The position numbers were made by a program, and so were the translations under genes. A stretch of 64,000 nucleotides of DNA, from the NCBI GenBank assembly GCA_965202585.1, contig OZ241826.1, positions 93,124,001 to 93,188,000 of the forward strand, in the 5' to 3' direction. This stretch comes from Thalia democratica. Taxonomy: Eukaryota. Below the pieces are notes generated by a model. It made no database searches, was not told where the DNA came from, and saw only the letters and a program-made list of their open reading frames with translations. Below, in pieces: positions 10,606 to 63,850 of this stretch (within the stretch, counting starts at the first letter, position 1; every line of letters begins with the position of its first letter).

Positions 10606-12261
10606 ATGCAACCGTTGAAAGATAAAGTGGAACTTTTTATAGAAAGTCATCCTAACTGCAGCAGTTTTTTACGTGGTCTCATTGAAAAGAGAGAAGGCGA
10701 AATATAGAATGAAACAGAAGATTTCGAAAACGGAAAGGTGCTTGAAAAGTCAATAAAGTTGTGTGGGTACGATGTGGCCAATTTAAAAAAATCAGTTCTT
10801 CCAGGATTCAAATACAAACTCGACCTGCTGAAGACCGACGATCCAGACTATGAGCTCCTTGAAAATTCGATTAAAATCAAGGATGCTTCAGGCAACTCCA
10901 GCTTCGAACCGAACAGTAACAACGAAGCTAAAAGTTTGAAGATATACCGAGTAGTGGCAGCTGAAAACACTTCAACAGGATCGGGTGGTTCAGATAGCGC
11001 TTCGAAAACTCTTTTGCTTCACGGGACGAAAGCACGAAACGTGGAAGGAATCCTGAAGACCGGGTTCAATCCTTCTGAAAAGGGGCTTTTCGGGCCCGGA
11101 GTATATCTGACTGGCAGCTTCAGCGAAGCGTGCATCTACGCCGAGAGTTTTGCCACAGAAAGTAACATGACCAAAAGAATCAGATACTTTTTTGTCAACG
11201 CTGTGGAAGTTTCAGAGAAAGGTTCACAAGCTCTTCTTCAAGACATAAAATCTTTTCAAAAGTATCAAAACTCAGATCCATCCGTGCAAGTTTTCGACTG
11301 TTTGACCAACAATGAAGATTCTGCACCAGACTTGTTTGATAGTAAACATAGAAAAATTTTGCACGGTAGTTTTCATAATACTGAACAAAAAATAGTGTTG
11401 GCTCATCACAGTTTAGTGGTTCCCGCTTATCTAATCGAGATTGAACTAAAAACACATGTGGCCGAAATTGTTAATGGAACGTTTTACAACGGTGGTTTAA
11501 AGTTGGGCAGATACTTTAAGGAAGGCGATTTTTATCAAAAAAGAAGCAGTATTCAAAAAAAAATTTCAGAGTTTTCTTTTGATATGATAGCAAAAGAGCT
11601 GGAAAAAGAAGTTAAAAGAAATTATTATGCAAAAATTGACAGGTTAAATTCTCGATTAGAAGAAGATACCAACAATATCATTAATCAGCTTTCTTTTCAA
11701 TTTAACAGCATTTTCGAATTGAAAAGTGACGAAAAAAGAAAATTCAGTACAGAGCTTGTGCAAAAAGGCAGTGATGACTACAACTTTATTTCATGTTCAT
11801 TCAGTTCTGCGAACGCATTTAAAATCAAACAGCTGTACAGAGTCAACCCTACTGACAAAAACGAATCAGTTAGGTTGGCACGTAAGTACCTTTACCTAAA
11901 CTTAGTGGAAAAAGATCAAGTAAAAAGCGTTTTGACAAGCGGTTATCCAGGAGCCAAGAAATCCGCAGGTATAAAAGGTGCGAAGTTATATTTCGCTGCA
12001 ACATATATAAATTATCGCAATAAAGAAGACTTCAGTTATTTTGAGGTAGATGGCACAGTAAAAAAGTTGCTGTTTGTGTTTGTGTCTGCCACTCAAGACG
12101 GTAATAACTACAATAATTTGGACATGAAAAAAGTTCAAGTTGTCGAGGATAGCAGAAAAAGTTTAGCCGTTAAAGGGTTTTTTGAACATGAATACCTCGA
12201 AACTTTTATCAGTCTCGCTAATTTATTTCCAGCCTACTTAATTGTTTTTGAGTTAGAATAA
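10606..12261 (+). pseudogene. Tandem PARP-like (ADP-ribosyltransferase fold) gene, copy 1, nonsense codon at codon 34
   Basis: ATG at 10606 as in copies 2 and 3. TAG at 10705-10707 where the paralogs have AAG. Motifs LLLHGT, GLFGPGVYLT and PAYLI; second degenerate domain in the C-terminal half. Confidence 0.8.
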
Positions 12262-14594: not shown

Positions 14595-16247
14595 ATGCAA
14601 CCGTTGAAAGATAAAGTGGAACTTTTTATACAAAGTCATCCTAACTGCAGCAGTTTTTTACGGGGTCTCATTGCAAAGAGAGAAGGCGAAATAAAGAACG
14701 AAACGGAAGATTTCGAAAACGGAAAGGTGCTTGCAAAGTCATTAAAGTTGTGTGGGTACGATGTGGCCAATTTAAAAAAATCGGCTCTTCCAGGATTCAA
14801 ATACAAACTCGACCTGCTGAAGACCGATGATCCGGACTATGAGCTCCTTGAAAATTCGATTAAAATCAAGGGTGCTTCGGGCAACTCCGGCTTCGAACTG
14901 AACAGTAACAACGAAGCTAAAAGTTTGAAGATGTACAGAGTAGTGACAGCTGAAAACGCTTCAACAGGATCGGGTTGTTTAGATAGCGCTCCGAAAACTC
15001 TTTTGCTTCATGGGACGAAAGCACAGAACGTTGAAGGAATCCTAAAGACCGGGTTCAATCCTTCTGAAAAAGGGCTTTTCGGGCCCGGAGTGTATCTGAC
15101 TGGCGGCTTCAGCGAAGCGTGCATCTACGCCGAGAGTTTTGCCACGGAAAGTAACATGACCAAAAGAATCAGATACTTTTTTGTTAACGCTGTGGAAGTT
15201 TCAGAGAAACGGTCACAAGCTCTTCAAGACATAAAATCTTTTCAAAAATATCAAAATTCAGATCCATCCGTGCGAGTTTTTGACTGTTCGACTAACAATG
15301 AAGATTCTGCACCGCACTTGTTTGACAGTCGACATAGAAAAATTTTGCACGGTAGTTTTCATAATACTGAACAAAAAATAGTGTTGGCTCATCACAGTTT
15401 AGTAGTTCCCGTTTATCTAATCGAGATTGAACTAAAAACACATGTGGCTGAAATTGTTAATGGAACGTTTTACAACGGCGGTTTAAAATTGGGCAGATAC
15501 TTTAAGAATGGCGATTTTTATCAAAAAAGAAGCAGTATTCAAGATGAAGTTTCAGAGTTTTCTTTTGATATGATAGCAAAAGAGCTGAAAAAAGAAATTG
15601 AAAGAAATCATTATGCAAAAATTGAGAGGTTAAATTCTCGATTAGAAAAAGAAACCAGCTTAATCATTAATCAGCTTTCTTTTCAATTTAGCAGCATTTT
15701 CGAATTGAATAGTGACGAAAAAAGAAAATTTAGTACAGAACTTGTGCAAAAAAGCAGTGACGATTACAACTTTATTTCATGTTCATTCAGTTCTGCAAAC
15801 GCATTTAAAATCAAACAGCTGTACAGAGTCAACCCTACTGACAAAAACGAATCAGTTAGGTTGGCACATAAGTACCTCTACCTAAACGTAGTGGAAAAAG
15901 AATAAGTAAAAAGCGTTTTGACAAGCGGTTATCCAGGAGCCAAGAAATCCGCAGGTATAAAAGGTGCGAAGTTATATTTCGCTGCAACATATATAAATTA
16001 TCGCAATAAAGAAGACTTCAGTTATTTTGAGGTAGATGGCACAGTAAAAAAGTTGCTGTTTGTGTTTGTGTCTGCCACTCAAGACGGTAATAACTACAAT
16101 AATTTGGACATGAAAAAAGTTCAAGTTGTCGAGGATAGCAGAAAAAGTTTAGCCGTTAAAGGGTTGTTTGAACATGAATACCTCGAAACTTTTATCAGTC
16201 TCGCTAATTTATTTCCGGCCTACTTAATTGTTTTTGAGTTAGAATAA
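14595..16247 (+). pseudogene. Tandem PARP-like gene, copy 2, in-frame stop inside domain 2
   Basis: GAA TAA (TAA at 15903-15905) replaces GAT CAA of copies 1 and 3. The same frame resumes to 16247. The truncated 436-aa product would keep domain 1. Confidence 0.8.
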
Positions 16248-24881: not shown

Positions 24882-25586
24882 TCTTTGTATTATTTGAGTA
24901 CTTATAAATCTTATAAAATTGATTTTCGGTAAATTTTTATGTCATATAAAGATTTTATAAGGAAAGAAATAATGCAAGTTAAGATCATACAAAAAAAAAA
25001 TTATTTGTAAAAACTTGTAAATGTTAAACATAACGTTCTTATAATAAAAAATAGTTTTATTAAAATCATTAGTAATATTGACTGTTCAAAAAATATTTTT
25101 GCATCAATCGAAGAATCTGACAACTTTTGAATATTTTTGTTCGTCTATTTTTTACAGATTAAGTTGTTCGATTAAATTTATCTTTAGTTATTTGATTAAG
25201 CGTTGTTTTTTGATAGTTAGTTTTGTTTGTTTCCAGCACATTGCTAAGTTTAATTTGTTTTGGTTTGCGACAACTAATTATCTGAGCCATAATTTGCAAT
25301 TCAAAACTATGTATTTTATTGAGAAAATTATTGGTTATACCTTTATTATTTTTTTAGCTGTAAAGTTTTTATTTACCTTGATTACACAGATACAAAATTT
25401 TCATATTAAAATATCACTAATTAAAATTTTCTGCAAAAAAAATGATATCTCTCAATTTTTTCTTCGGTAAGATCTATTCTATGTTAAAGACTTATATTTT
25501 AACTGAGTAACACTTTATAAAAAGTTTGTTTCAACGTTTTAATTTAATTGTTAACAACCACATTATTTTTTTTCCTGGATAAGACG

Positions 25587-25680
25587 TTAAAAGGTATCCA
25601 AGTGGTGTACCACTCGATAAATTATTTTGATTTCTCAGAGGTTCTTTTTGCACCAGGTCCTAGGACCAAATATTTTGACT
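25587..25680 (+). repeat. Dispersed repeat family R1 copy, absent from the paralogous segment
   Basis: TTAAAAGGTATCCAAGTGGTGTACCACTCGATAA...GCACCAGGTCCTAGGACCAAA. No counterpart near 45150-45190. Confidence 0.7.
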
Positions 25681-28600
25681 GTTTTTTTAATCGTTCAATA
25701 ATCTATATATTTTGACTAAATAGCTTCAGATTAAATTATTCAACAAAATGTAGCTTTAAAATTACTACTAAGATCCGTTTTATCTTAGAAAAACATTTTT
25801 TATTCTTGTTTTTTAAAGTAACTATTTTTATTCTTGTAAAGTTTAAAAAACAAATAATATTGATGCAAGTTATAGTTTATTGGTTAAAAATAAAAAAAAA
25901 CGATGAAATCAGATTATTTTAGTTTGTCATTGTTCGGTATCAAAAACCAGCTGAATCTGAAAATAATATAAATTTTAAAATTTATAAAATATGCAATGAA
26001 CACTGCTGTATAACTTAGTTTTTTAGTATGTTTTATTTATTTTTTATTCTCAAATGTTGTATTAAATGTTAATTAAATTTTGAACAGCAATACTTTATCT
26101 TCTAATAAGAAAATTTTTATTAAAAAAGTTTGAAAATTTAAGATGAAAATACTCAAATATTTTGTCATTTAGTTTAACATAGTAACATTTATTAATTGTA
26201 GAACAAACTTACATAGTGTCTGGAACGAGCTTAAGCTTGATCTGTGTAAAAAATAAGTTTTTAAGTTACTTAGGTTAATTTAATTTTTATTAATTAAACA
26301 GCTAAGGCCTAAAACTTAATTAATTCAAACATAACTCATTAAGCTTTACTTAAAAAAAGCTTACTTGATTTTTTTCAAAATAAATGTTAGTAAACAAAAC
26401 TCATAAATGTTTATACTGTTTTGAAATGTGTCTTTTATTCGATTAATAAACAATTTGAAATACTTAAAAAAGCCTAGAACTAGTGGTTCTCAATAAAAAA
26501 GTTTCAGTAAAATAGATAAAAATAATTATGCTGCATTTCTTACGGCAGATCTCGGCAACCTTACATTATTAATTACCAAGTTTTTTGTAAAAATTTGTTC
26601 GCTGGCAGTATCCAATAAAATAGTGCATTTTTTTACCAAAACTACGCAATAATAAATCACTAGTAGTTACTAATTATCAAAATAAGAGCCTAACGCAGTT
26701 TTTAACACAAAATATTTTGTATTGATTTACTGAAGTAAATCTAAACTGAAAAGTACACTAAGTGCCGCAGTATTCATTTGGAAAAATATCTCAAAAAAAC
26801 TACTAACCGTTGCTTACGTCACCATAGTAACCATGGTGATAATACCCGTGGTGGTAACCGTGGCGATATCCGTATCCGTAGTAGTAATCTGATTAAAAAT
26901 TATTATATTTTTGTTAATTTTTGTTTAAACTCAATATTTTGTGTCGCTAATACTTTCTACTTTAAATATTGTAGTAAATATGTTTTGTACAAAACAAAAA
27001 CATATTTGTTCAAATGTATTAAAATTAGTACAAATTGATATTTTTTGTTACTTTACATTTAAACTTTAAATGTTTGCTATTAAAATAACTTCAACTTTTG
27101 AACAAAGTAACAAGTATATAAAATATTTTTAATTAGTTGTAAATTAAATGTATACATAAAGTAAAATACTGAATAAAGTCAATTTAAAAAGGAAATGGTT
27201 ATATTGTATCATAAAAACATCATAAATATGTTGTATCAAAAATATACTTATAATCATAAAAACAAACCATCATTGTTGTTGTTGTCACCATAGTAATGAT
27301 GATGGTAATAAGGATGTCCGTATCCGTATCCATAATAGTAATCTGTTTTTGAATAATAATATTAAATTAAATCTATACATAGCACCACTTGACATGGTTA
27401 ATATAAAACTAAGTCTAAACATGAAAAAAAAATGGCTTAATAATCTCTCAATAAAAATTTAAGCATCATTGTAAAACAATTATCTAAAGTGGTAAAAACA
27501 AACACTTTTTATTGTTATTGCCACTATCTTCCTAAAACACATCAAGTTATAAATTAACAATGAAATAATTATACATTTGTATAAAACTTTCTTTGCATTC
27601 TTTTACAACAAATATAGAACATTTTTGGCGAAAAATACGAATAAAGTAAGCTTTCTGAGTATGGCAAAATAACATTAAAAACTATCGAGGTATTTAAAAT
27701 ACTTAGCTAAAAAAATTTAAAGTAAGTTTTTAAATTCAGTGATCATATTGTATCAACAAGACATACTTATAACTATAATAACAAACCATCGTTGTTGTTG
27801 TTGTCACCATAGTAATGATGATGGTAATAAGGGTGTCCGTATCCGTATCCATAATAGTTTGAAGTTAAACGTTATTTAAACTTTATGTATTTTTTTTTAA
27901 TTTAGCTTAAACATAAAGCCTGTTTTAAAAAATGAAAAATATTCTAAATTGCAAAATTAAATAACGTTGAGCGATTATCAAAATCGATTCATATAATTCA
28001 CTTATAGGGTTTATGAAAGAATAGTTTATAAGTATAACTTATTTCAAAATTTCTACTAAATACAAAAAAGTTGTGGTTGTTATTCTATTATAGTTTTTTT
28101 AAATGAAGAACGAATGAGAGTACTAAAAAGTATTTCTAAAGTACAGTTTTTTTAATCTTCTTACAAGTAAAAACAGTTTAAAAAATAGTTAAAATATTGA
28201 AAAATTAACTTTCTAAAAAAAAAAATATTAATAAACGATAACAAAGACATTGTAAAATAAATTAAAATATAATTCATTTTAAAGCTTTATATCTTAAATG
28301 AGAATGATTGCAATATAAACGTAAAACTTTGTATTAAAAAGTTTTAAAATAAGTGCGCTTAACTTAATGAAACAAAAACAATTATATTTTTTCGAAATCT
28401 TGATAGTTTGGAAAATTATTAAAGTAAAGTTTACTAGTACACAGTTTTGAAAGTCCACGTAAGTATTTGGTTCATCAAACTATTGCAACTAACTTTAAAC
28501 CGTAAAATTTAAAAAGTTAGTTTTTAAACAGTCTCCCTCAGCTAATAGTGTGAGTGGTTCTAAAATGTCTTTTTAACTCACAGTCTTTTTGTTCTTCATC

Positions 28601-28797
28601 ACCGAGAATGGCATGACCGATTCCTCTAACAGCACCAATTGCGTGATGAGCAACTCCAGCTACTCCTCTGATGGCATGGTGAATAAGTCCGAAGAAAACT
28701 GTTTGTTTTCGTTAAATTTTAAAAAAGTAAAAGTTCTATGTCAACACGTAACTATATTTATAATAATTTAATAAATTATTTTTACCACTTTATAACT

Positions 28798-29004
28798 GGG
28801 GCACATTCAAATCCACCCGCGTTTAAAATATACCCAGTCAAATTCGAAAACCGCTTACCATCGAGGGTAAGGATTAGAGGTAACAGTAAAAGTGAAAAAT
28901 AAATTAAAAAAATTAAAAAATGTATAAAATAAATGAATGATTAAAGAAAATAAAAAATAAAAATTGGGTGGATTTTGAACGCGGGTGGATTTTGATAGTA
29001 TACC
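28798..29004. mobile_element. MITE with ~40-bp TIRs and telomere-like internal motif, intronic
   Basis: Left CAAATCCACCCGCGTTTAAAATATACCCA versus right TGGGTGGATTTTGAACGCGGGTGGATTTTGATAGTATACC. Interior GAGGGTAAGGATTAG. Shared with 48497-48716. Confidence 0.7.
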
Positions 29005-29950
29005 TTTAAACTAACACAAAGATTTCGCTTTTGTATAATAAAAGGATTTAGTTTAGTTTTAAGTTTAAAGAAATATTTAACTTTAACTAAAATTTAAAGA
29101 AAGAAATTATTTTATCATTAAAATTAATTTTAATACAACCAGTAAAACGAATTTACATAATTAAATTTAAGATAAAACTAAAAAAAAAGCAAATGTTATT
29201 AGGTTGTTTATAACTCACAGTCTCTGTTGTTGTCATTCACTTTAAGTCCGTCCTTTACAAGTTGGTCCATAACTTTGTTTGCCATATCATTAACTGTTTT
29301 AAGTTGTATAATATAAAATCTTTATTTGATTTTAAGTAGTGTAAAACAGTATGTTTGTTTCGTGTATAAGTTTGTTTATATTATAGTGTTTATAAAGCAG
29401 TTTAAATAAAAAAATATGGTAAAAGTAAGAAATTATATTTTGACTTAAATAAATTAGTCTTTATTTAAAATCTTAAGTTTAAAACAATAACTGCTTAATT
29501 TAGTAAAACTTATTTAACTGAATAATGTTCTTGAATTTTATAAAACTTGTCTGCAAACAGTAGCTTTTTATTTTATGTTTCTTCGAAAAATAAATGTTGA
29601 GATTAAGTTAGGAAAGATCTTGTTGTGTAACTTAGTTAGACATGTTATTAAATTTAGGATTTTAAGACTAAAATAATATTTTAGTTTAACTTACTTTCTT
29701 CATCACCGAGTATGGCATGACCGATTCCTCTAACAGCACCAATTGCGTGATGAGCAACTCCAGCTACTCCTCTGATAGCGTGGTGAATAAGTCCGAAGAT
29801 GACTAAATTTAAAAATAATTTCAAATACATTTAAAAAGAGTATGCTACAAAATAGCACATGTATTTACACAATTAATAACTTTTATAAAATCTCGATTAT
29901 TTACTTACAGGTTGAATTAATATGTAATAATTTTAAACTTTAAAAAAGCT

Positions 29951-30519
29951 AAATTTAAATAAATATCACAGATGTTCTTGTGCTAAAACTTTATTCCGAC
30001 TAACGGCGTTTCACTGCTCTCAAATAAATTTAAGAACAGATCTACGGAGTCTATAAAATGTTAACACACATTAGAAAAAAAGCAGAAAAAAGCATGTATA
30101 ATTATGTATAGTGTTTATCTAGGTAGTAACTATAAATGGACTTTATGGTTTAAAAACAAAGTTTGGGATATTTTAAGTAAGTTTTAAGTTAGTTCCCAAA
30201 CTTTGTTTTTAAACCATAAAGTCCATTTATAGTTACTACCCCAAACTTTGTTTTTAAACCATAAAGTCCATTTATAGTTACTACCTAGATAAACACTATA
30301 CCTAATTATACATGCTTTTTTCTGCTTTTTTTCTAATGTGTGTTAACATTTTATAGACTCCGTAGATCTGTTCTTAAATTTATTTGAGAGCAGTGAAACG
30401 CCGTTAGTCGGAATAAAGTTTTAGCACAAGAACATCTGTGATATACATTCCGATAAGCTTATCAGGATCTCCAGGATTTAACGCCTTATAACGTTACATC
30501 TTATAAATTTAAATAAATA
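29951..30519. mobile_element. Palindromic insertion with 15-bp target-site duplication (retroelement, possibly Penelope-like)
   Basis: AAATTTAAATAAATA at 29951-29965 and 30505-30519. The paralog near 49665 has a single diverged copy. Arms 29963-30168 and 30194-30444, with a 45-bp direct duplication in the right arm. Confidence 0.75.
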
Positions 30520-31267
30520 GATTTTTCAAATCTTAATTAAATTCAGACTTAAATAAAATCAAATTGTCTTTGAAGTTACCAAATTCTTTTTATATTGTTA
30601 ATTTCAAAATTTTTAAGTATGCAAAAATTTTGATAATTTTCGCCTAGCATACTTTTAAACTCATAAAAGAACTAAAACTTAAATCATATTGTTTAAACAG
30701 TTTAAAAACTTACAATCGTTTTTAGACTTGCTGTCTTTAGATTGGAAAATATCCTCTACCATTTGTTTAGCTAAAACTTGAGCGACTAAAAATGAAAATA
30801 CAATTAAAAAACATAAGCATTTTAATGTAAATAAACAGCTAGTATTGTGACTAAAATCAAATAAGTTAAACATAAACTGCTGAGTTTTTATAATTTTGTC
30901 ACTGTAGAAGTATTTTATCACTGACAATCTTTTTGTTCTTCATCTCCAAGTATGGCATGACCGAGTCCTCTAACAGCACCAATTGCGTGATGAGCAACTC
31001 AGGCTACTCCTCTGATAGCATGGTGAATAAGTCCGAAGAGAACTAATTATTAAATATTTAGTCAAGAAATTAACTAAACCTAAAAAAAGTATTGATGTGT
31101 TAATATATATATAAATGCTTGTAAAAACATAATAGCTAAAAGATGACACAAGTTTATTTAAAACTAACAATCTCTGTTTTCTTTGTTGTCTTCCATATTT
31201 GCCTGTTTAAGAAGTTCATCTGTCATTTCTTTAGCCAATTTGTTGCCTGATTTAAACTTAATTAAAT

Positions 31268-35927: not shown

Positions 35928-37573
35928 ATGCAACCGTTGAAAGATAGAGTGGAACTTTTTATAGAAAGTCATCCTAACTGTAGCAGTTTTTTATGTGGTC
36001 TCATCGAAAAGAGACAAGGCGAAATAAAGAATGAAACTGAGGATTTCGAAAACGGAAAGGTGCTTGAAAAGTCAATAAAGCTGTGTGGGTACGATGTGGG
36101 CAAGTTTCAAAAAATCAGCTCTTCCAGGATTCAAATGACCTGCTGAAGACCGATGATCCAGACTATGAGCTCCTTGAAAGTTCGATTAAAATCAAGGATG
36201 CTTCAGGCAACTCCAGCTTTGAACTGAACAGTAATAGCGAAGCTAAAAGTTTGAAGATATACAGAGTAGTGACAGCTGAAAAAACTTCAACAGGATCGAG
36301 TAGTTCAGATAGCACTCCGAAAACTCTTTTGCTTCATGGGACGAAAGCACGAAACGTAGAAGGAATCCTAAAGACCGGGTTCAATCCTTCTGAAAAAGGG
36401 CTTTTTGGACCCGGAGTGTATCTGACTGGCAGCTTCAGCGAAGCGTGCATCTACGCCGAGAGTTTTGCCACGGAAAGCAACATGACCAAAAGAATCAGAT
36501 ACTTTTTTGTTAACGGTGTGGAAATGTCTGAGAATGGTTCACAAGCTCTTCAAGGTATAAAATCTTTTCAAAAATATCAAAATTCAGATCCATCCGTGCA
36601 AGTTTTTGACTGTTCGACTAACAATGAAGATTCCGCACCAGACTTGTTTGATAGTCAACATAGAAAAATTTTGCACGGCAGTTTTCATAATACTGAACAA
36701 AAAATAGTGTTGGCTCATCACAGTTTAGTAGTTCCCGCTTATCTAAACGAGATTGAACTAAAAACCCATGTGGCCGAAATTGTTAATGGAACATTTTACA
36801 ACGGTGGTTTAAAATTGGGCAGATACTTAAAGGAAGGCGATTTTTATCAAAAAAGAAGCAGTATTCAAGATGAAGTTTCAGAATTTTCTTTTGATATGAT
36901 AGCAAAAGAGCTGGAAAAAGAAGTTAAAAGAAATTATTATGCAAAAATTGACAGGTTAAGTTCTCGATTAGAAGAAGATACCAACAGTATCATTAATCAG
37001 CTTTCTTTTAAATTTGGTAGCATTTTCGAATTGAAAAGTGACGAAAAAAGAAAATTCAGTACAGAGCTTGTGCAAAAAGGCAGTGATGACTACAACTTTA
37101 TTTCATGTTCATTCAGTTCTGCGAACGCATTTAAAATCAAACATCTGTATAGAGTCAACCCTACTGACAAAAACGAATTAGTTAGGTTGGCACATAAGTA
37201 CCTTTACCTAAACCTAGTGGAAAAAGATCAAGTAAAAAGCGTTTTGACAAGCGGTTATCCAGGAGCCAAGAAATCCGCAGGTATAAAAGGTGCGAAGTTA
37301 TATTTCGCTGCAACATATATAAATTATCGCAATAAAGAAGACTTCAGTTATTTTGAGGTAGATGGCACAGTAAAAAAGCTGCTGTTTGTGTTTGTGTCTG
37401 CCACTCAAGACGGTAATAACTACAATAATTTGGACATGAAAAAAGTTCAAGTTGTCGAGGATAGCAGAAAAAGTTTAGCCGTTAAAGGGTTGTTTGAACA
37501 TGAATACCTCGAAACTTTTATCAGTCTCGCTAATTTATTTCCAGCCTACTTAATTGTTTTTGAGTTAGAATAA
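35928..37573 (+). pseudogene. Tandem PARP-like gene, copy 3, frameshifted
   Basis: ATG at 35928. Relative to copies 1 and 2 there is a 1-nt insertion (about 36106-36116) and an 8-nt deletion (ACAAACTC, after 36136), net -1 frame. This explains the split ORFs 35928-36146 and 36083-37573. Confidence 0.8.
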
Positions 37574-44493: not shown

Positions 44494-46603
44494 TTTTGTA
44501 TTAGTTGAGTACTTATAAATCTTTTAAAATTGATTTTCGGTAATTTTTTATGTCATATAAAGATTTTATAACGAAAGAAATAATGCAAGTTAAGATCATA
44601 CAAAAAAAAATTATTTGTAAAAACTTGTAAATGTGTAATATAACGTTCTTATAATAAAAAATAGTTTTATTAAAATTATTAGTAATATTGACTGTTTAAA
44701 AAATATTTTTGCATCAATCGAAGAATCTGACAACTTATAAATATTTTTGCTCGTCTACTTTTTACAGATTAAATTATTCGATTAAATTTATCTTTAGTTA
44801 TTTGATTAAGCGTTGTTTTTCATAGTTAGTTTTGTTTGTTTCTAGCACATTGCTAAGTTTAATTTGTTTTTGTTTGCGACAACTAATTATCTGAGCCATA
44901 ATTTGCAATTTATAACGAAGCACTTCATCGAAAAAAATGTTCAATATATATATATATACACCTACTCCTTTATTTAGCTGTAAAGTTTTTATTAACCTCG
45001 ATTACACAATTAAAAAGTTCTTATAAAAAATATTTCTGATAAGAAAACAATATCTATTAACTTTTTTCTCGGCAACATCTATTTTATGTTAGACACTTAT
45101 TTTTAAATTGAATACAACTGTATAAAAATTTTATATTAACGTTTTAGTTTTAAGTTTTTTCGATCACTTTATGTTTTGACTGATAAGCTATAAATTTAAT
45201 TATTCAACAAAACTTAGTTTTAAAACTGCTATAAAAATCCGTTTTCTCTTGGTTTTAAACAATTTTTTTGCTTTGGTTCTTAGAAAGTAATTATTTTATT
45301 CTTATGTAGTTAAAAAAACAAACTTTTTTGATGCAAGTTATAGTTTATTGATAAAAAAAACAAAACGATGAAATCATGTTGTTAGGTATTGTAATCCAGT
45401 TGAACCTGTAAAATATAAAAAAAATTGTAAAGCTAACAAAAATATGCATTGTTACTGCTGTATAACTCAGTTTTTCAGTCTGTTCTACTTATTATTTTAT
45501 TCTTGAATATGGTCCTAAGGTAATTTTGAACAGCAATACTTAAACTTCTAATAAGAAATTTTATATTAAAAATGTTTTAGAATTTTTAATGAAAGTATTT
45601 AAATATTTTTCAATAAGTTTAACATACTAATTTATTTAATGATATATTTGGATGTATTTACATCTTAACTCTTCAATATTATTCTTATGTAAAAAACTAA
45701 TCTCCATTTTTAAATTTCTTAACTATTTACCAAAAGTTTAGTAATACAATTTGGTATCTAAACTGGTAAGTTTAAAACTTACATAAACTATACTGTCCAA
45801 ATCTAAACTATTTTACATTCATAATGAGTAAAGTAAGCAATCTTTATCAGACGATTTATAAACAAATAGCAACAATTTTGGACCTTTACTAAATTCACGT
45901 ATTCAACATTTTTAAAACACAAAGAAAAGTTTAATAAGTATTTAAGCTCGGTACCTTTTCTAAGAGTTTTTTTCAAATGTTTTAATAAGTTATTAGCAAT
46001 TATTAGCTGTAATTAAATAAACTTACGTAGTGTTTGGGACGAGCTTAAGCTTGATCTGTGCAAAAAATAAGTAATTGTAAGTTTAAGTTAGTTTATTAAT
46101 TAATTAATAAGCAATGGTCTAAAACTAAGTGATCTCAAACACTTGCTTAACTTAAAAAAAGCTTACTATATTTTTGTAAAAAATAATATTAGTTTATAAA
46201 ACTTATAAATGTTTATACTTTTATAAAATATGTCTTTTAATCGATTAATAAACAATTTGGAATACTTAAAAAAGCGTAGAACTAGTGGTATTCAATAAAA
46301 AAGTCTCAGTAAAATAGATAAAAATAAATGTGCTACATTTATTACGGCAGATCTCGGCAACCTTACATTCTTAATTATAAAGTTTTTTGTAAAAAAATGT
46401 TCGCTGGCTGTATCCAATAAAATAGTGCATATTTTTACCAAAACTACGCAATAATAGATCACTAGCAGTTACTAAATATCAAAATAAGAGCTTAACGCAG
46501 TTTTTACCACAAAATGTTTTTATTAATTTAGCAAAAACTAATACAGCTGAAAAGTACATTAAGTGCCGAAGTATTCATTTGAAAATATATCTCAAAAAAA
46601 CTA

Positions 46604-46689
46604 CTAACCGTTGCTCACGTCACCATAGTAACCATGGTGATAATACCCGTGGTGGTAACCATGGTGATATCCGTATCCATAGTAGTAAT
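46604..46689 (-). CDS. Polyprotein exon 20: (D)YYYGYGYHHGYHHGYYHHGYYG-DVSN(G*)
   Basis: Acceptor ATAATCAG. Ends at TAG 46604-46606, or at donor GTTAGT after 46609. Confidence 0.8.
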
Positions 46690-49600
46690 CTGATTATTAA
46701 TTATTATATTTTTGTGAAGTTTTGTTTAAACTCAATATTTTGTGTCGCTAATACTTTCTACTTTAAATATTGTAGTAAATATGTTTTATACAAAACAAAA
46801 ACATATTTGTTTAAATGTACTAAAATTAATATAAATTAATATTTGCTGTTACTTTACATTTAAACTTTAAATATTTGCTATTATAATAACTTCAACTTTT
46901 GAACAAAGTAATAAGTATATAAATATTTTTAAAAAGTTGTAAATTAAATGTATACATAAAGTAATAATAATAAATAAAGTCAATTTTAAAGGAAATGATC
47001 TTATAGTAATCTAAAATAAACTTATAAATATAAAAATAAACCATCATTATTGTTGTTGTCACCATAGTAATGATGATGGTAATAAGGGTGTCCGTATCCA
47101 TATCCATAATAGTAATCTGATTATTGATAAAAAAAGTAAATTAAATCTATACATAGCACCACTTGACATGGTTAATATAAAACTTAAATATTCAAAAATT
47201 AGCTTGCTAATATTTCAATAAAATTTAAGCATCACTATACAACAAATATCTAACATTATTATACAAACATTTATTATTATTATTGGCACTACCTAAACCA
47301 TAAACCAATTTAGTTATAAGTTATTATGATGTTTAATATACATTCGTATGAAACTTTCATTGTATTCTATTACAACACAATATATATAGAACGTTCTTTG
47401 CAAAAACAACAAAAAAAAAAAGTAAGCTTTCTTACTATGGCAAAATAACATTGAATTTTATTGAAGTATTTAAGTACTTAGCTAACAAAATTCAAACGTA
47501 AGTACTACAGGCAGTGATTATATAGTAATCTAAAATAAACTTCTTATTATAAAAACAAACCATCATTGTTGTTGTTGTCACCATAGTAATGATGATGGTA
47601 ATAAGGGTGTCCGTATCCGTATCCATAATAGTCTGAATTTAAAAATTAGTTAAACTTTCTTTTTTCATCTAGCTTAAATATAAAGCTTGTTTTCATAAAT
47701 TAAAATTTTTCTAAATAGCAAAATTAAATAACGTTTAGCGATTATCGAAATAGATTCATTTAGTTTACTTATAGCGTTTATAAAAGAATACTTTTATAAG
47801 TATAACTTATTTCTAAACTTCTACAAAATACAAAAAGTTTTAAGCTTAAAATCTTTTTGAAAAATAAGTTGTGGATGCTATTTTGTTAAAGCTTTCCCAA
47901 TTAAACAACGAACAAGAGTACTAAAAAATACTTTTAAAGTAGAGTTTTGTTAATCTTTTTACAAGTAAATAAAGTTAAAAAAATAGTTAAAATATTGAAA
48001 AATTAAACTACTAAAAATAATATTATTAAACAATTACAAAGTCACTGTGTAATAAACTAAAATTAATACATTTTAAAGCTGTTCATCTCAAATGAGAACA
48101 AGTTCAATAAAAATGTAATATTTAGTACTAAAATTTTTTAAATAAGTAAATATAAATATAATTATTTAATAAATAACTTAATAAAACAAAAATAAATACA
48201 ATTTTTTTGAAATTTTGATAGTTTGGAAATTTCAAAAGTTAGTTTTTAACAGTCTCCCTCAGCTAATAAGGGGTTCTAAAATGTCTTTTTAACTCACAGT
48301 CTTTTTGTTGTTCATCACCGAGTATGGCATGACCGATTCCTCTAACAGCACCAATTGCGTGATGAGCAACTCCAGCTACTCCTCTGATAGCGTGGTGAAT
48401 AAGTCCGAAGAAAACTGAAAAAAAGTAAAAGTTCTCAGTCAACACGTAACTTAAATTTTAATGAAATAAGATATTCTTTTTACTACTTTTAAAACTGGGA
48501 CACGTTAAAAATTCACCCGCGTTTAAAATCCACCCAATCAAATTTGAGAACCGCTTACCGATCGAGGGTAAGGGTTAGGGGTAACAGTAATAGCGAAAAA
48601 TATTTTAAAAAATGCAAAAGCATATAAAGTAAATTAACAAATGAAGAAAATATAAAAACATTGGGTTGATTTTAATTGGGTGGGTTTTGAACGCAGGTGG
48701 ATTTTGATAGAATACCTTTAAACTAACACAAAGTTTTCGCTTTTGTATAATATAAGGGTCTAATTTAGTTTTAAATTAAACAAATATATTTAGCTTTGTT
48801 TTAATACTAAAATAAAGAAACTATTCTATCATTAAATATATTTTAATATTACCTTTGGAACTAATTTACATAGTTAAATTTAAGATAAAACTAAAAAAAA
48901 AAGCAAATGTAGTTAGGTTGTTTATAACTCACAGTCTCTGTTGTTGTCATTTACTTTAAGTCCGTCCTTTACAAGTTGGTCCATAACTTTGTTTGCCATA
49001 TCATTAACTGTTTTAAATTTTATAATAAAAAAACTTTATTTGATTTTAAGTAGTGTAAAACAGTATGTTTGTTTCGTGTATAAGTTTGTTTATATTATAG
49101 TGTTTATAAAGCAGTTTAAAGAAAAAATCTAGTAAAAGTAAAAAATCTATGTTTTTTACTTAAATAACTTAGTCTTTATTTTGAATTTTAAGTTTAGAAC
49201 AAAAACTGCTTAATTTAGTAAAAATTATTAAACTGAACAATGTTCTTGAATTTTATAAAACTTGTCTGCAAACAGTAGCTTTTTATTTTATGATTCTTTG
49301 AAAAAAAATGTTGAGATTAAGTTAGGAAGTATCTTGTTGTGTAACTTAGTTAGACATGTTATTAACTTTGGGTTTTCAACACTAAAATAATATTTTAGTT
49401 TAACTTACTTTCTTCATCACCGAGTATGGCATGACCGAGTCCTCTAACAGCACCAATTGCGTGATGAGCGACTCCTGCTACTCCTCTGATAGCATGGTGA
49501 ATAAGTCCGAAGATGACTAAATTTAAAAATAATTTCAAATACATTTAAAAAGAGTATTCTACAAAATAGCACATGTATTTACACAATTAATAACTTTTAT

Positions 49601-52600
49601 AAAATCTCGATTTTTTGCTTACAGGTTAAATAAATATGTTATTATTTTAAACTTTTAAAAAGCTAAATTTAAATAATTAGATCTTTCAAATCTTAATTTA
49701 ACTCAGACTTAAATTTAATTAATTGTTTTTGAAGTTACTAAATTCTTTTTATATTGTTAATTTCAAACATTTTTAAGTATGCAAAAATTTTGATAATATT
49801 TGCCTAGCATACTTTTAAACTCATAAAAGAACTAAAACTTAAACCATATTGTTTAAACAGCTTAAAAACTTACAATCGTTTTTAGCCTTGCTGTCTTTAG
49901 ATTGGAAAATATCCTCTACCATTTGTTTGGCTAAAACTTGAGCGACTAAAATAGAAAATACAATTAAAAAACATAAAAATTTTAGTGTAAATAAACAGCT
50001 AGTATTGCGACTAAAATCAGATAAGTTAAACATAAACTGCTGAGTTTTAATAATTTTTTCACTGTAGAAGTACTTTATAACTAACAATCTTTTTGTTCTT
50101 TATCTCCGAGTATGGCATGGCCGAGTCCTCTTACAGCACCAATTGCGTGATGAGCAACTCCAGCTACTCCTCTGATAGCGTGGTGAATAAGTCCGAAGAG
50201 AACTAATTATTAAATATTTAGTCAAGAAATAAAATAAACTCAAAACAATTTAGGTATTAACATAAGAAAAAAAAATACTTTATTTAAAAAACATAATAAC
50301 TAAATTATGAAACAAGTTTATTAAAAACTAACAATCTCTGTTTTCTTTGTTGTCTTCCATATTTGCCTGTTTAAGAAGTTCATCTGTCATTTCTTTAGCC
50401 AATTTGTTGCCTGTTTTAAACTTAATTTAATTTTTGTGCTAACAAAAAGTGCATATCTTAAAAATGAATTAGTATTTTTTACTTTTTCAGCCAGAGAAAA
50501 AAATATCCTAAGATTTTTGATAAAATATTAAATATATAAGAATAAGTATATCTATTTTGATGTAAATTTTAGTTTTCAAGAGCAAGTATCTTAATTTGTG
50601 TCTTTAACTGCACTTGTTGCATAGGAAACTCATAATACTTCGAATAAACTACTCAAGAAAATGTATAATCTATTCGTAAGTATAAGATCTATTCATGAGG
50701 CATGATGTCTTGAACTACTCTAATGATAGATTTTTAAATATAAACATTTTTACTGAGTTTTCAAATTAAAATTTGTTATAGCTTACTTTCTTCATCTCCG
50801 AGTATGGCATGACCGAGTCCTCTAACAGCACCGATTGCGTGATGAGCAACTCCAGCTACTCCTCTGATAGCGTGGTGAATAATTCCAAAGATGACTAATC
50901 ATTTTATGTTTTTTATAACCACTTATGGCTAAAAATTATGTTTTTAATGAATAAAACAACACTCAAATTTTTTTCATTCCAATATTTTTCGTCAAATTCT
51001 CTTCAGGGAAACTACAATTGAAACAATAAAATAAAACACAACAAGTATTTATACAAAATAATGTTTTTTACAAACTAATTAACTGATCAATTAAGTAAAC
51101 ATAAATGTAATCAACGAAAATGTAATCAACAAAGCTTTAAAAATCAACACAAAATGGTCTTAACTAAATAAGGCTAGGGTGTAATCAAATTTTTTCTTTT
51201 TGCATAAATTTGGTTTTTTTAAATGTATTAAAATGGCTTCAAGTCTAATTAATTCCAATGTATTTGAACATTGTCGCATTACACTGAAATTAGATAATGC
51301 AAACTTTTTTCCACAACTTGGATTATTCACAAGGTGTTCTGCTATCGCAGATTTTTTTTATTGCATTTTTGACTGCAATACTCTTTTCGTCTTTTTCGTC
51401 TTTGATATATGAAGTGATACACTTGGGAACATAATCCTTTATTCTAGTTGTGAGGTATGTTCCCAAGTGTATCACTTCATATATTAAAGACGAAAAAGAC
51501 GAAAAGAGTATTGCAGTCAAAAATGCAGTAAAAAAATCTGCGATAGCAGAACACCTTGTGAATAATCCAAGTTGTGGAAAAAAGTTTGCATTATCTAATT
51601 TCAGTGTAATGCGACAATGTTCAAATACATTGGAATTAATTAGATTTGAAGCCATTTTAATACATTTAAAAAAACCAAATTTATGCAAAAAGAAAAAATT
51701 TGATTACACCCTAGCCTTATTTAGTTAAGACCATTTTGTGTTGATTTTTAAAGCTTTGTTGATTACATTTTCATTAATTACATTTATGTTTACTTAATTG
51801 ATCAGTTAATTAGTTTGTAAAAAACATTATTTTGTATATATACTTGTTGTGTTTTATTTTATTGTTTCAATTGTAGTTTCCCAGAAGAGAATTTGACGAA
51901 ATATATATTTGAATGAAAAAAATTTGAGTGTTCTTTTATTCATTAAAAAGTTATAAAATAAAGTCTGATGTTTAAATTATTAAAAATTATATTATTTTGA
52001 ATCTATGAACTAAATAGCGCAATTAACACTAATTAAATTTTTCTAAATGCACAACAAGTTGTAAAAGAAGAAGTGAAATTGAGTGGTTTAAAATGTTTGT
52101 TAAACTAACAATCTTTCTGTTGTTCGTCACCAAGTATGGCATGACCGAGTCCTCTAACAGCACCAATTGCGTGATGAGCAACTCCAGCTACTCCTCTGAT
52201 GGCATGGTGAATAATTCCGAAGATGACTGAAATTAAAAATAACACACTCTCGTAATTAACCCGTCAAATGAATTATAATAAAATAAATAGTGTACACTCT
52301 TTTAAATATTTGTTATAAGTTAGGGTTTGAAAACGTACAATTCTCAGGCTGGCTCGCCAATAGAAATATCAGGCTTGCCTGGTATTTATAAGTTTAAAAT
52401 GACAGGTGCATAATATTTAAAATTGAGCTTTTTGATAAGACTCTGTTTGAAAATGATTTTATACATTATTATTACTTAGCAGTTCTTGTAAAAATATGTT
52501 TCTAATTATAGTTTTAAATTTCAAGTTGTTTTTGAACTTTTTAGAGTTTTTTAACATATACACGGCCTGATAAGATTTAAAATCTGGTAAAGATTTTTTG

Positions 52601-55600: not shown

Positions 55601-55756
55601 TTTAGTTGTTACTAAAAACTAAACACTAAAACTGTAGTCGTATCCTTATTAGTAGTAAAAACTTTTAAATCGTTATATATAATCAAACAAACCAGCTTTA
55701 GACATTGAAGTTGCTACAAAAGCAAAAGAAAGAGCGACAACCAAACAGAACTTCAT
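46604..55756 (-). CDS. Multi-exon secreted polyprotein precursor of eight His-rich amphipathic (clavanin-like, putative antimicrobial) peptides and three Tyr/Gly/His-rich peptides
   Basis: Twenty exons, all with AG/GT boundaries and all introns phase 1, join into one open frame of about 572 aa starting MKFCLVVALSFAFVATSMSKA. Differences among repeated exons are almost all synonymous in this frame. The exact 3' end (GGT TAG at 46604 versus a further spliced exon) is uncertain. Confidence 0.88.
47042..47116 (-). CDS. Polyprotein exon 19: (D)YYYGYGYGHPYYHHHYYG-DNNNND
   Basis: 75 nt, acceptor ATAATCAG, donor GTTTAT, phase 1-1. Confidence 0.8.
47561..47632 (-). CDS. Polyprotein exon 18: (Y)YYGYGYGHPYYHHHYYG-DNNNND
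   Basis: 72 nt, acceptor AATTCAG, donor GTTTGT, phase 1-1. Confidence 0.8.
48251..48262 (-). CDS. Polyprotein exon 17: putative 12-nt microexon (S)EGD
   Basis: TATTAG-CTGAGGGAGACT-GTTAAA, identical 12-mer in copy A (28530-28541). The upstream intron would be only 35 nt. Confidence 0.45.
48298..48414 (-). CDS. Polyprotein exon 16: peptide 8 (F)FFGLIHHAIRGVAGVAHHAIGAVRGIGHAILG-DEQQKD
   Basis: 117 nt, acceptor TTTTTCAG, donor GTGAGT. Confidence 0.88.
48497..48716. mobile_element. MITE with TIRs and GGGTTAGGG core, intronic (paralog of 28798-29004)
   Basis: AATTCACCCGCGTTTAAAATCCACCCAAT versus TTGGGTGGGTTTTGAACGCAGGTGGATTTTGATAGAATACC. Confidence 0.7.
48933..49007 (-). CDS. Polyprotein exon 15: spacer (I)NDMANKVMDQLVKDGLKVNDNNRD
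   Basis: 75 nt, acceptor AAAACAG, donor GTGAGT. Confidence 0.85.
49409..49516 (-). CDS. Polyprotein exon 14: peptide 7 (F)IFGLIHHAIRGVAGVAHHAIGAVRGLGHAILG-DEE
   Basis: 108 nt, acceptor AATTTAG, donor GTAAGT. Confidence 0.88.
49874..49945 (-). CDS. Polyprotein exon 13: spacer (F)AQVLAKQMVEDIFQSKDSKAKND
   Basis: 72 nt, acceptor ATTTTAG, donor GTAAGT. Confidence 0.85.
50086..50202 (-). CDS. Polyprotein exon 12: peptide 6 (F)LFGLIHHAIRGVAGVAHHAIGAVRGLGHAILG-DKEQKD
   Basis: 117 nt, acceptor TAATTAG, donor GTTAGT. Confidence 0.88.
50333..50410 (-). CDS. Polyprotein exon 11: spacer (S)NKLAKEMTDELLKQANMEDNKENRD
   Basis: 78 nt, acceptor AAAACAG, donor GTTAGT. Confidence 0.85.
50787..50894 (-). CDS. 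Polyprotein exon 10: peptide 5 (F)IFGIIHHAIRGVAGVAHHAIGAVRGLGHAILG-DEE
   Basis: 108 nt, acceptor TGATTAG, donor GTAAGC. Confidence 0.88.
50941..51949. mobile_element. Penelope-like retroelement 3' fragment as a ~1-kb inverted repeat (GIY-YIG C-terminus plus hammerhead-like motif)
   Basis: Arms 50941-51433 and 51456-51949 with a 22-nt spacer. Translation LTTRIKDYVPKC...SAIAEHLVNNPSC...NFSVM...ELIRLEAILIHLKKPNLC resembles the C-terminal part of the Penelope GIY-YIG endonuclease. Confidence 0.75.
52110..52226 (-). CDS. Polyprotein exon 9: peptide 4 (F)IFGIIHHAIRGVAGVAHHAIGAVRGLGHAILG-DEQQKD
   Basis: 117 nt, acceptor ATTTCAG, donor GTTAGT. Confidence 0.88.
52850..52924 (-). CDS. Polyprotein exon 8: spacer (I)NDMANKVMDELVKDGLEVNDNNRD
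   Basis: 75 nt, acceptor AAAACAG, donor GTGAGT. Confidence 0.85.
53323..53430 (-). CDS. Polyprotein exon 7: peptide 3 (F)IFGLIHHAIRGVAGVAHHAIGAVRGLGHAILG-DED
   Basis: 108 nt, acceptor AATTTAG, donor GTAAGT. Confidence 0.88.
53683..53754 (-). CDS. Polyprotein exon 6: spacer (F)AQVLAKQMVEDIRQAKDSKVKND
   Basis: 72 nt, acceptor TTTTTAG, donor GTAAGT. Confidence 0.85.
53896..54012 (-). CDS. Polyprotein exon 5: peptide 2 (F)IFGIIHHAIRGVAGVAHHAIGAVRGLGHAILG-DKEQKD
   Basis: 117 nt, acceptor TAAACAG, donor GTTAGT. Confidence 0.88.
54144..54221 (-). CDS. Polyprotein exon 4: spacer (S)NKLANEMTDELLKQTNMEDNKENRD
   Basis: 78 nt, acceptor AAAACAG, donor GTTAGT. Confidence 0.85.
54589..54696 (-). CDS. 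Polyprotein exon 3: peptide 1 (F)LFGIIHHAIRGVAGVAHHAIGAVRGLGHAILG-DEE
   Basis: 108 nt, acceptor TAAACAG, donor GTAAGT. Confidence 0.88.
55088..55147 (-). CDS. Polyprotein exon 2: pro-region (V)AKMMANDLIKDGNTKENKD
   Basis: 60 nt, acceptor TTAAAG, donor GTTAGT. Resembles the spacer exons. Confidence 0.8.
55693..55756 (-). CDS. Polyprotein exon 1: signal peptide MKFCLVVALSFAFVATSMSKA
   Basis: ATG at 55756, basic-hydrophobic-small residue pattern, donor GTTTGT, phase 1. Confidence 0.82.
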
Positions 55757-61692: not shown

Positions 61693-63850
61693 ATGGAAAA
61701 CTTTGCTAAACCGAAGAAAAGTTCAATCAACTTTGAAACAAACGACAAAAAGAAATTGAAATACAATTTCAAAATGTTTCAACAAAAACAAGCAAACGAC
61801 GACGAAGGTGAAAACAGAAGCAATTCAGTTGGAACAAATTCACCATGTTCTTCTACGAGCTCCACTCTGTACATTGACGAGAATGCACAGACAAACAGTC
61901 AGTTTTGAATTTACTTGTCTTGAAATTATATGGCTCAAACATAAAATATAATCAAACTTCAAAAGTTACTAAAATCTTAGCTCTAAACACTTGAAAAAAA
62001 AATTACATGAAAAATTAGCTTTAGTTTTTATTACACAATTACGCTTTAAAGTTTCAACTATTACAAGCAGTTTGACTATTTAAATTCATTAATAGTTAGA
62101 CATATATTTTTCACTGAAACAGGCTCACAGCAAGGATTAGTAGTTGATAAACCTGTGATCATGCATAACAGCCAATCACAAATACCCACTGAGGAAAACA
62201 GCCAGTCACAAATATCCACTGTGGAAAACAGCCAATCACAAATATCCACTGTGGAAAACAGCCAATCACAAATACCCATTGTGGAAAACAGCCAATCACA
62301 AATACCCATTGTGAAAAACAGCCAATCACAAATACCCATTGTGGAAAACAGCCAATCGGCAGGTGAGAAACTCGCGATTTGCAACAAGGAAACCTGGAAC
62401 AAATTGAACGAGGCAGGAAAACCTGAGATGGTGCTGACGAGACCAGGAAGGTAAAATTTTGAGTTTTTTTAATTTACTAATGAAAAATGTTTTATTAATT
62501 ACGTAAACTTTTAAGATATTAAACAACTTTAATGACTTTAAAACTTGTTTATGTTAGTATAAATTTTATTTTAAGCAACCTGCTAACAAATCGCAAAGTT
62601 ATTACTGACTGATGTAAACTTTTTAGCTGAAAAGGATTTTTATTTAATTTTAAAATTAAAACTAAGTATGTAAAAAAGGCAAACTTTTAAAAGTATTCTT
62701 AGACAACAAACTTTTTTTCGATCAACTACTTAAAAACCTTTAATTTAATTCATGTACAATTCTTTATTGTCTTGTTAACATTTTTTAAGCAAAAGGATGC
62801 TGAAATGTTATTAATACTACTTTGACGTCTAAAAAATTTATCACCTTTTTTAAATAAAAAAACGTTGTTTTAGTTTAATTTTTCAATAATTAATAAAACA
62901 CTATTTAAACCTGAAACCTCACAGGCGGATGTTCCCAACCATCAAAGTGAGGATGATCAACCTCCGTCCTGATTCCCAGTACATCCTCTTCCTCAAGTTC
63001 GAACCCGCCACCAACCTCAAACACAAGTGGGACAGGTGAGTAAATTTTGACAACTGACACTTTTATCGGAAATAACTTATTTTTTTCTAAAATGTTTATC
63101 TATGAAACAAAAATGAGTTGTATTGAAAGTAAAAATTAACTTTTTTTATTACCCGGTTTCAGTTGAAAAATTCCCACTTTATTAAACACCAATAAGTTAT
63201 TAAAAAGAAATTAAAAAAAATAGAATATAGTATGAAATAAGAAAAGTGATAAGTTTTAATTCGTGGCAATTCAACCCAACAGGGACCGGATGGAGTGGCA
63301 GTCCACTTTCTGCGGGGACCCTCAGCCCGACACGCTTGGTCACGTGCACAGGATGTCGCCATCTAGCGGCGCTGATTGGATGAAATACGAGGAGGTGGAC
63401 TTCGATCAGGTGTTTCTGACCAACTGCAGGGAAACGGCAGTCGCTAAAAACTTTGTGAGTGAAAAATTTTTTTAATTGAGTAGATTACCAACAAAATTTC
63501 ATTATACTAAACCTTTAAGTTATTTACAAATTAAATGAGTACAAAGTGTATATAAGCCCTTTAAACATTTGTAAGAAACCATTTGTTTTGTTAGTCTTTT
63601 CAACAAATTTTTTACAATAAACAAAAAAGTTAATTTCTCTTTTAAGTATTCGTAATATTATGACATATATTAACTTTTGAAGTATGTATACTAAATAAAT
63701 AAAAATATTAAACAGTCTTTATTGACTTCAATGATGAAATATCAGCCAGTGTTTTCTCTGATTCGATTGGACAGCACTGGTGAAAACATCAAGCGATTTA
63801 CATTTAAGGAAACCGAGTTTATTGCAGTCACTGCGTACCAAAACCAAACC
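61693..63850 (+). CDS. Divergent T-box transcription factor, first five coding exons (continues beyond window)
   Basis: Exons 61693-61897, 62123-62450, 62925-63035, 63283-63454 and 63716-63850 splice in frame (phases 1, 2, 2, 0, 0). They give ETWNKLNEAGKPEMVLTRPGRRMFPTIKV...HVHRMSPSSGADWMK...FLTN...TSMMKYQP...FTFKETEFIAVTAYQN. Subfamily not assignable. Confidence 0.92.
62167..62358 (+). repeat. 30-bp coding tandem repeat (6 full units plus a partial; NSQSQIPIVE-like)
   Basis: AACAGCCAATCACAAATACCCATTGTGGAA units inside T-box exon 2. Confidence 0.92.

Follow-up and report, generated by a model that had tools for sequence, protein, structure and literature searches.

Precursors that carry many peptides in one chain are well known. 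In cnidarian neuropeptide precursors, for example, there are many copies of a peptide, each followed by a glycine that donates the amide, and the chain is cut after an acidic residue standing before the peptide. In ascidians, the precursors of clavanins and styelins are extended at the C-terminus, and in the clavanin precursor the peptide is followed by a glycine and then by an acidic extension containing tyrosine, glycine and histidine, a likeness that we use as a lead only. Here we describe a related kind of arrangement in the pelagic tunicate Thalia democratica. In a stretch of 64,000 nucleotides (assembly GCA_965202585.1, contig OZ241826.1, positions 93,124,001 to 93,188,000; hereafter “the window,” in whose own coordinates features are given unless stated in Mb), a gene on the minus strand, gene A, encodes a secreted precursor of 578 amino acids in one open frame spread over 21 exons. 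The product consists of a signal peptide, eight His-rich amphipathic helical peptides of identical type with acidic spacers, and a 79-residue tail of three Tyr/Gly/His-rich modules. These tail modules are probably a second released product of the same gene.

The helical peptides find their closest described counterparts in the clavanins of Styela clava hemocytes, which are also His-rich amphipathic helices starting with phenylalanine and which act in a pH-dependent manner (PMC2866484). The layout of the genes differs: the clavanin prepropeptide is about 80 residues long and carries one peptide, whereas gene A carries eight helical and three Tyr/His modules, one per exon. With a clavanin A query whose sequence was confirmed from papers, a BLASTP comparison to exon 17, the last helical exon of gene A, returns no alignment at E ≤ 100. 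For the tail, the compounds to consider are the tunicate DOPA/TOPA peptides (tunichromes, plicatamide, halocyamines, ferreascidin and the halo-DOPA peptides of holdfasts), which are small, derived from tyrosine and often contain histidine, and whose genes are unknown (PMC3039461; PMC13079984). Units such as RHYG and HYYG, found in the tails of relatives of gene A, are similar in size to these compounds, while the modules of gene A itself have 17–21 residues. The expected C-terminal end here is an amide made from glycine, whereas the tunicate DOPA compounds end in dehydro-DOPAmine; the holdfast peptides, moreover, are rich in Glu/Gln, Ser and Gly rather than His. The His-rich proteins of squid beak offer a further comparison, having a disordered C-terminal region of His, Tyr and Gly that is soluble in acid and condenses as the pH rises (PMC10766971). 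Unlike them, the tail has much more tyrosine, Asp/Asn linkers and the setting of a peptide polyprotein, and there is no homology; gene A lacks the GHGxY pentarepeat, of which there is one occurrence in 49 relatives. The nematode NLP/CNC peptides with YGGYG and the plant shepherins are low-complexity host-defence peptides of Gly/aromatic or Gly/His type, some of them made from multi-copy precursors. Runs of YGGYG/GYGGY or GGH/GHG repeats are found neither in gene A nor in its relatives, and in contrast to these Gly-rich antimicrobial peptides the tail is dominated by tyrosine, with clusters of histidine.

The tail is encoded by exons 18, 19 and 20, all of phase 1-1 with an AG acceptor and a GT donor. 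It adjoins exon 17 (48298..48414, minus strand, as are all exons of the gene), which encodes the last helical peptide, FFGLIHHAIRG...AILG-DEQQKD, and is linked to exon 18 by an RNA joint from 47632 to 48300. With a final T in exon 17 and an initial AC in exon 18 (47561..47632), the junction codon T|AC specifies tyrosine; this is followed by YYGYGYGHPYYHHHYY-G-DNNNND, and the first peptide is therefore YYYGYGYGHPYYHHHYY-G. Exon 19 (47042..47116) encodes D-YYYGYGYGHPYYHHHYY-G-DNNNND and so the identical peptide, while exon 20 (46609..46689) encodes D-YYYGYGYHHGYHHGYYHHGYY-G-DVSN. Both exons 19 and 20 start with AT after a G, which yields the second Asp of the DNNNNDD linker. Exons 18 and 19 differ by TAC/TAT and AAC/AAT exchanges and by one absent TAC, and the differences are synonymous. 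In all these respects (three modules with DNNNNDD linkers, the exon numbers in what is now a 21-exon model, and silent differences between the copies) the original prediction, made from the letters of the window, proves accurate. Tyrosine accounts for 35% of the whole tail, and histidine and glycine for 18% each. The helical unit, for its part, is a near-perfect amphipathic His-rich peptide of 32 residues with glycine at its end.

The end of the gene needs correction. Exon 20 had been taken to be the last exon, closed by a TAG stop codon at 46606-46604; because RNA contigs depart from the genome at 46609 and resume with the sequence at 46055, exon 20 is not terminal and this TAG is intronic. 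It lies in intron 20 (46056..46608), where there is no RNA depth between 46300 and 46608 and whose donor, G|GTTAGT, is kept in paralogs C and D. The start of exon 21 (46029..46055, acceptor cacag) finishes an Asp codon and adds Gln-Ala and a TAA stop (46047-46045) before the 3′ untranslated region, giving the precursor the C-terminus ...YYG-DVSNDQA. The sequence of the loose RNA ends matches at 46055 in gene A and at 26222-26241 in a tandem copy, copy B, with 0 matches expected by chance. Exon 21 is confirmed by P0033, an independent, transcript-derived protein that ends in ...GDVSNDQA. A GTAAGT near 46028 suggests a further intron in the untranslated region after the start of exon 21. At the other end of the gene, exon 1 (55693..55756) holds the start codon and the signal peptide MKFCLVVALSFAFVATSMSKA, which is the same in the relatives P0033 and P0049; two small exons (55527-55504 and 53754-53683) were added to the gene model later. 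The surrounding DNA is AT-rich, with spliced genes and a GC content of 0.20–0.37 per 2-kb windows, mostly about 0.25. A search of the genome for GH6, a marker of tunicates, returned no match, and neither did its controls.

The evidence for expression comes from assembled contigs, not raw reads, of four marine metatranscriptome runs in two studies. These contigs map to the predicted exons only and leave the introns bare, and their joints fall at CT..AC, i.e., GT..AG on the minus strand, including those between exons 17 and 18 and between exons 19 and 20. Exon 18 is represented over 47578-47632 by contigs that continue at 48300 and 50086 into helical exons lying upstream; one contig runs from 47114-47042 in exon 19 straight to 46689-46609, and exon 20 is found complete in the RNA runs of studies P1 and P5, the latter outside the set whose contigs were mapped. 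A degenerate pattern of the motif has 11 sites in the 802-Mb genome (reversed control: 0), all of which belong to four paralogs of one chromosome and lie at their 3′ ends; two of the paralogs are in the window and two approximately 350–370 kb away. Among the 11 copies of the module, 8 of 9 variable sites are at codon position 3 (binomial p-value approximately 1E-3); the ninth exchanges His for Arg in a copy that is decaying, and the remaining exon changes are synonymous. Exons 19 and 20 are 95.5–98.7% identical between paralogs, compared with 76–92% for the intron between them (98.9% for the B/C pair), and 3′ of exon 20 the identity drops to 45–61% in pairs involving the two distant loci. The proposed frame is the sole one open across exons 18–20, the other two reaching stops in exon 20. 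Transcripts ending before exon 18, or a different reading frame, had been named as outcomes that would speak against the prediction; what we find is that the three exons are transcribed, coding, read in the proposed frame and not skipped.

How, then, is the tail treated in the precursor? Gene A has exactly 11 glycines with Asp/Glu behind them, one at the end of each of the 11 cargo peptides, and there is not a single dibasic pair or Gly-Lys/Arg in the 578-residue protein. Each tail module has an Asp before it, a Gly at its end and an Asp after it, and so do the helical peptides. We segmented 49 relatives at D/E/N/K/Q, a procedure that does not presuppose glycine. All 14 distinct Tyr/His segments (3–35 amino acids) fit the pattern Asp | ... 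Gly | Asp, although glycine makes up only 17% of their interior, and 35 of the 38 helical segments fit it as well. The same punctuation around contents of 3–35 residues suggests that tail modules are treated like helical peptides, i.e., excised, with the glycine possibly serving for amidation. The idea of a second class of cargo thus gains a shared punctuation that is kept in relatives, its release being predicted from sequence. The proposed C-terminal amidation keeps the glycine at each module end and loses the classic basic site after it, which is absent throughout the protein. Compared with PAM substrates, the glycine after the peptide is present (11/11) and the basic site following it is missing; compared with cnidarian precursors, in which glycine is followed by basic residues, gene A has Asp/Glu after glycine and no dibasic sites. 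In line with the cargo reading, the genome encodes a copper monooxygenase domain of PHM/DBH type, with two exon-level matches above the cut-off for Cu2_monooxygen; this domain is shared with enzymes like dopamine beta-hydroxylase (DBH), and the matches therefore cannot tell an amidating enzyme from a DBH-like one.

Relatives of the precursor come mostly from ocean metatranscriptome catalogues, and all are unnamed. An exhaustive HMMER search with the helical exon finds 19 proteins, and a word-based search with one of them finds 35. Among them is P0033, a complete precursor of 118 amino acids that contains a single helical peptide and a single Tyr/His module. In other relatives the HHGY runs of the tail are longer or shorter, the first module differs, or the tail has solely RHYG, HYYG and GYYG units, which stand between the same flanks. 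Five relatives (P0030, P0049, P0051, P0036 and P0040) have extra types of cargo in the Asp | ... Gly | Asp punctuation, among them a Cys/Pro/His peptide, ...FIIPFIRPHIMICPTHHG, as well as FTGFGIPKHLWGKPGAAKWLSRYG, FPWYIPLIG and RRPRPRGPYTVSRYVNGVWTTTHHYNG. As far as can be read from these sequences, the polyprotein family is a general multi-cargo precursor system. EukProt lists a distant member, P0045, under the foraminifer Bolivina argentea; its two helical-type modules share approximately 62% identity with the query peptide. Either this protein is a contaminant in that transcriptome or the family extends past one animal lineage.

Comparison with known families yields no name for any part of the precursor. 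A phmmer search with the helical exon against 1.84 billion representatives finds 0 named proteins, and no Pfam family matches above threshold. Two sub-threshold Pfam candidates were rejected: SGP, a compositional match seen with the P0033 tail only, scores 20.7 bits where 26.7 are required, and DUF5429, an inconsistent match to the helical peptide, reaches 24.5 and 17.7 bits where 27 are required, is absent in most relatives and did not turn up in the literature. A sequence search of the PDB with P0033 gives chance matches only (E approximately 1), and the ESM Atlas has no usable match to exon 19. In a literature search for peptide strings, HHAIRG occurs in no paper and HHAIGA once, in an unrelated paper of 1948. 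We also scanned JGI metagenome contigs with a degenerate pattern and discarded the 11 loci obtained as unrelated low-complexity proteins, mostly prokaryotic-looking, with no relatives among them. Some of these loci (L029, L034, L036, L037 and L035) have their own points of interest: one group consists of prokaryotic-looking contigs with conserved low-complexity proteins of Tyr, Trp, Gly and His (...GYYGYGYWHGYHHGYWHGYW...), and another contig, rich in GC, has the gene of a small secreted YWRYHRRYYGYGYHHPYWHH... protein. In composition such proteins converge on the tail.

The explanation that we tentatively favor, giving it a little less than an even chance, is that the tail consists of Tyr/His/Gly peptides that are excised at Asp boundaries, possibly amidated, switched by pH and self-associating, and that are released with the helical peptides. 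A protease that does not depend on dibasic sites would cut the precursor at its Asp-marked boundaries and free three peptides of 17–21 residues, whose terminal glycine could be converted to an amide. The peptides would be soluble in acidic storage and, on release, would associate through hydrogen bonding between His and Tyr and through stacking of Tyr, so that a condensate or gel would be laid down alongside the helical peptides. This condensate could bind metals, or it could become cross-linked if the tyrosines were oxidised. The computed charge of a module is about +3 to +4.5 at pH 5.5, a granule-like value, and near neutral at pH 8.1, that of seawater, and structure prediction for the tail gives a pLDDT below 50 with no secondary structure and no fold. 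There are two precedents: short His/Tyr/Gly peptides of squid beak phase-separate as the pH rises through His-Tyr hydrogen bonds and Tyr stacking (PMC10766971), and fibrils formed by GYGYGYG heptapeptides bind the metals Cu, Ni, Co and Zn (PMC10510724). It is the lack of a fold and the charge switch, taken together with these precedents, that lead us to favor a pH-switched, self-associating peptide. DOPA formation, metal binding, wound sealing and antimicrobial action are suggested by the composition and may be among its properties.

Several observations weigh against this explanation. The relatives share ancestry, and the count of 14 out of 14 boundaries does not represent 14 independent events; in P0067 one tail module closes with Cys rather than Gly. 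Processing would require cutting at Asp as well as amidation where no basic site follows, and the enzymes for both are hypothetical here. Genome searches for tyrosinase and for hemocyanin-type phenoloxidase gave 0 matches, with the controls likewise silent. At the level of RNA, contigs built from short reads merge repeated exons, leaving the isoform structure ambiguous, and certain joints skip exons (47632 to 50086; 46689 to 47561). We do not take such joints, or those that go back along the gene, as alternative splicing, since near-identical exons are merged in such contigs and the paralogs have exon ends in common.

Other explanations of the tail deserve to be weighed against these data. Like the extensions of ascidian precursors mentioned above, the tail could be a C-terminal pro-region that condenses or sorts the precursor into granules, or shields the membrane-active helices, before it is removed and lost. 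Each precursor has a single tail regardless of the number of helices (three modules to eight helices in gene A; one to one in P0033), P0049 has four helices and only tiny tail units, and the tail changes fast, by insertion and deletion of HHGY units or by swaps to SYGLGHPYHLRSIYG or RHYG units, in contrast to a helical peptide that hardly varies; the predicted disorder of the tail also suits a pro-region. Yet a throwaway spacer needs neither a Gly at the end of every sub-unit nor Asp flanks on units of three residues. The ordinary spacers of the same protein are rich in Lys, Glu and Asn and thus unlike the tail, and the modules are under strong purifying selection. We regard a discarded pro-region as rather unlikely, though a serious contender. 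Less probable still, and in our opinion improbable, is that the protein is never cut but acts as a modular structural or adhesive protein secreted into the tunic, the mucus net or attachment sites, with the tail as a cross-linking or coacervating end domain. Comparable arrangements are known from squid beak proteins, with their C-terminal repeats, and from the byssal collagens of mussels, with their His-rich flanks. Such a role would account for the absence of convertase sites throughout and for the combination of a Tyr-, His- and Gly-rich composition with a pH switch; the sub-threshold likeness of the tail to the Gly/Tyr-rich envelope proteins of sulphur globules (Pfam SGP) points the same way, and coacervation of beak proteins is driven by their C-terminal modular repeats (PMC10766971). 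It is hard to reconcile, however, with the strict Asp/Gly-Asp punctuation around at least four unrelated types of cargo in relatives, with a helical unit that, in its length, amphipathicity and glycine end, is typical of released host-defence peptides, and with the lack of the GHGxY motif in gene A.

It is also conceivable, though highly doubtful, that the modules serve as ribosomal precursors and give rise, after excision and further trimming, to small DOPA/TOPA peptides like the tunichromes, plicatamide and the halocyamines. The Asp-flanked RHYG, HYYG and GYYG units of relatives match such peptides in size and composition, and the field leaves room for the proposal: the biosynthetic origin of tunichrome-type compounds is scarcely known (PMC3039461), and the recent holdfast DOPA peptides were sequenced by mass spectrometry alone, the word “transcriptom” being absent from the text of that paper (PMC13079984). 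Against it, the published backbones YYGPY, FFHLHFHY and HYGW occur in none of gene A and its 49 relatives, and those products end in decarboxylated dehydro-DOPA, which is not obtainable by glycine-directed amidation; the searches for Tyr-oxidising enzymes, whose controls were silent as well, add no match. A broader proposal is that the family is the first genetic source of tunicate-type catechol peptides, whose modules would be excised at Asp, oxidised to DOPA and secreted with the helical peptides as a combined mixture, antimicrobial and either sealing or metal-binding. It would span everything from units of 21 residues to the HYY and RHY triplets of relatives and would involve an Asp-directed processing system previously undescribed; we consider it quite improbable. 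Finally, the exons might be non-coding, either as a chance open frame in AT-rich DNA or as untranslated exons. Exons 18 and 19 can be read in a second open frame as well (TIMDTDTDTL...), and the RNA support is wholly from assembled contigs rather than raw reads. Nevertheless, the third-position bias of the variation, the contrast in conservation between exons and intron, a single 578-residue frame from the signal peptide onward across 21 exons, and the conservation of the tails in transcript-derived proteins of relatives leave this possibility close to refuted.

The second paralog in the window, copy B, is a 5′-truncated tandem duplicate of the 3′ half of the gene (25500-31100, minus strand), approximately 19.2–19.8 kb from gene A. 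Its tail exons (26808..27858, minus strand) are the same three, with His changed to Arg in the last one. The acceptor of the first tail exon is lost (AG to AA, approximately 27860), a helical exon is frameshifted at 31046/30998, and no signal-peptide exon for this copy is found within the window. Copy B looks like a decaying partial duplicate. One loose RNA end (run X3) is an exact match to its variant of exon 21, which suggests that copy B or a similar allele may still be transcribed. Two more paralogs lie on C1 at 93.512-93.527 Mb (plus strand) and 93.5426-93.5476 Mb (minus strand; loci L009-L012). One of them has three intact tail exons, and the other has two intact ones and a decayed third (77% identity).

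The window contains some other features. Three intronless open reading frames on the plus strand (10738-12261, 14595-15905 and 36083-37573; 436–507 amino acids) have PARP catalytic domains (Pfam E-values 1E-10 to 6E-12), and the homologues of the one at 10738-12261 are all unnamed environmental proteins in ENA. Within gene A, the long intron separating the two four-peptide cassettes holds an inverted pair of near-identical open reading frames on both strands (51160-51730; 121 and 92 amino acids) with the common motif KDEKDEKSIAVKNA..., probably a transposon remnant. At 62929-63039 (plus strand) there is an exon-sized open reading frame, MFPTIKVRM...PDSQYILFLKFEPA, which by eye resembles the start of a T-box DNA-binding domain.

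The gene described here belongs to an unnamed family and varies the theme of the multi-peptide precursor, and the reading of its tail as cargo is partly supported. What sets it apart is that two chemically unrelated products are combined in one gene in which basic cleavage sites are entirely absent. The polyprotein family, which has no Pfam entry and no named homologue, is so far seen only in ocean metatranscriptomes and in the present genome. If the tail is merely a pro-region, it is a modest detail of an otherwise interesting polyprotein of antimicrobial type. If the modules are released, they would reveal a new processing code, Asp | peptide-Gly | Asp, and gene A would be a concrete gene with which to test the long-missing ribosomal origin of Tyr-derived catechol peptides. 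The modules themselves would then be natural His/Tyr peptides of 17–21 residues with a predicted pH switch near the pH of seawater, which may be of relevance to the study of condensates and adhesives.

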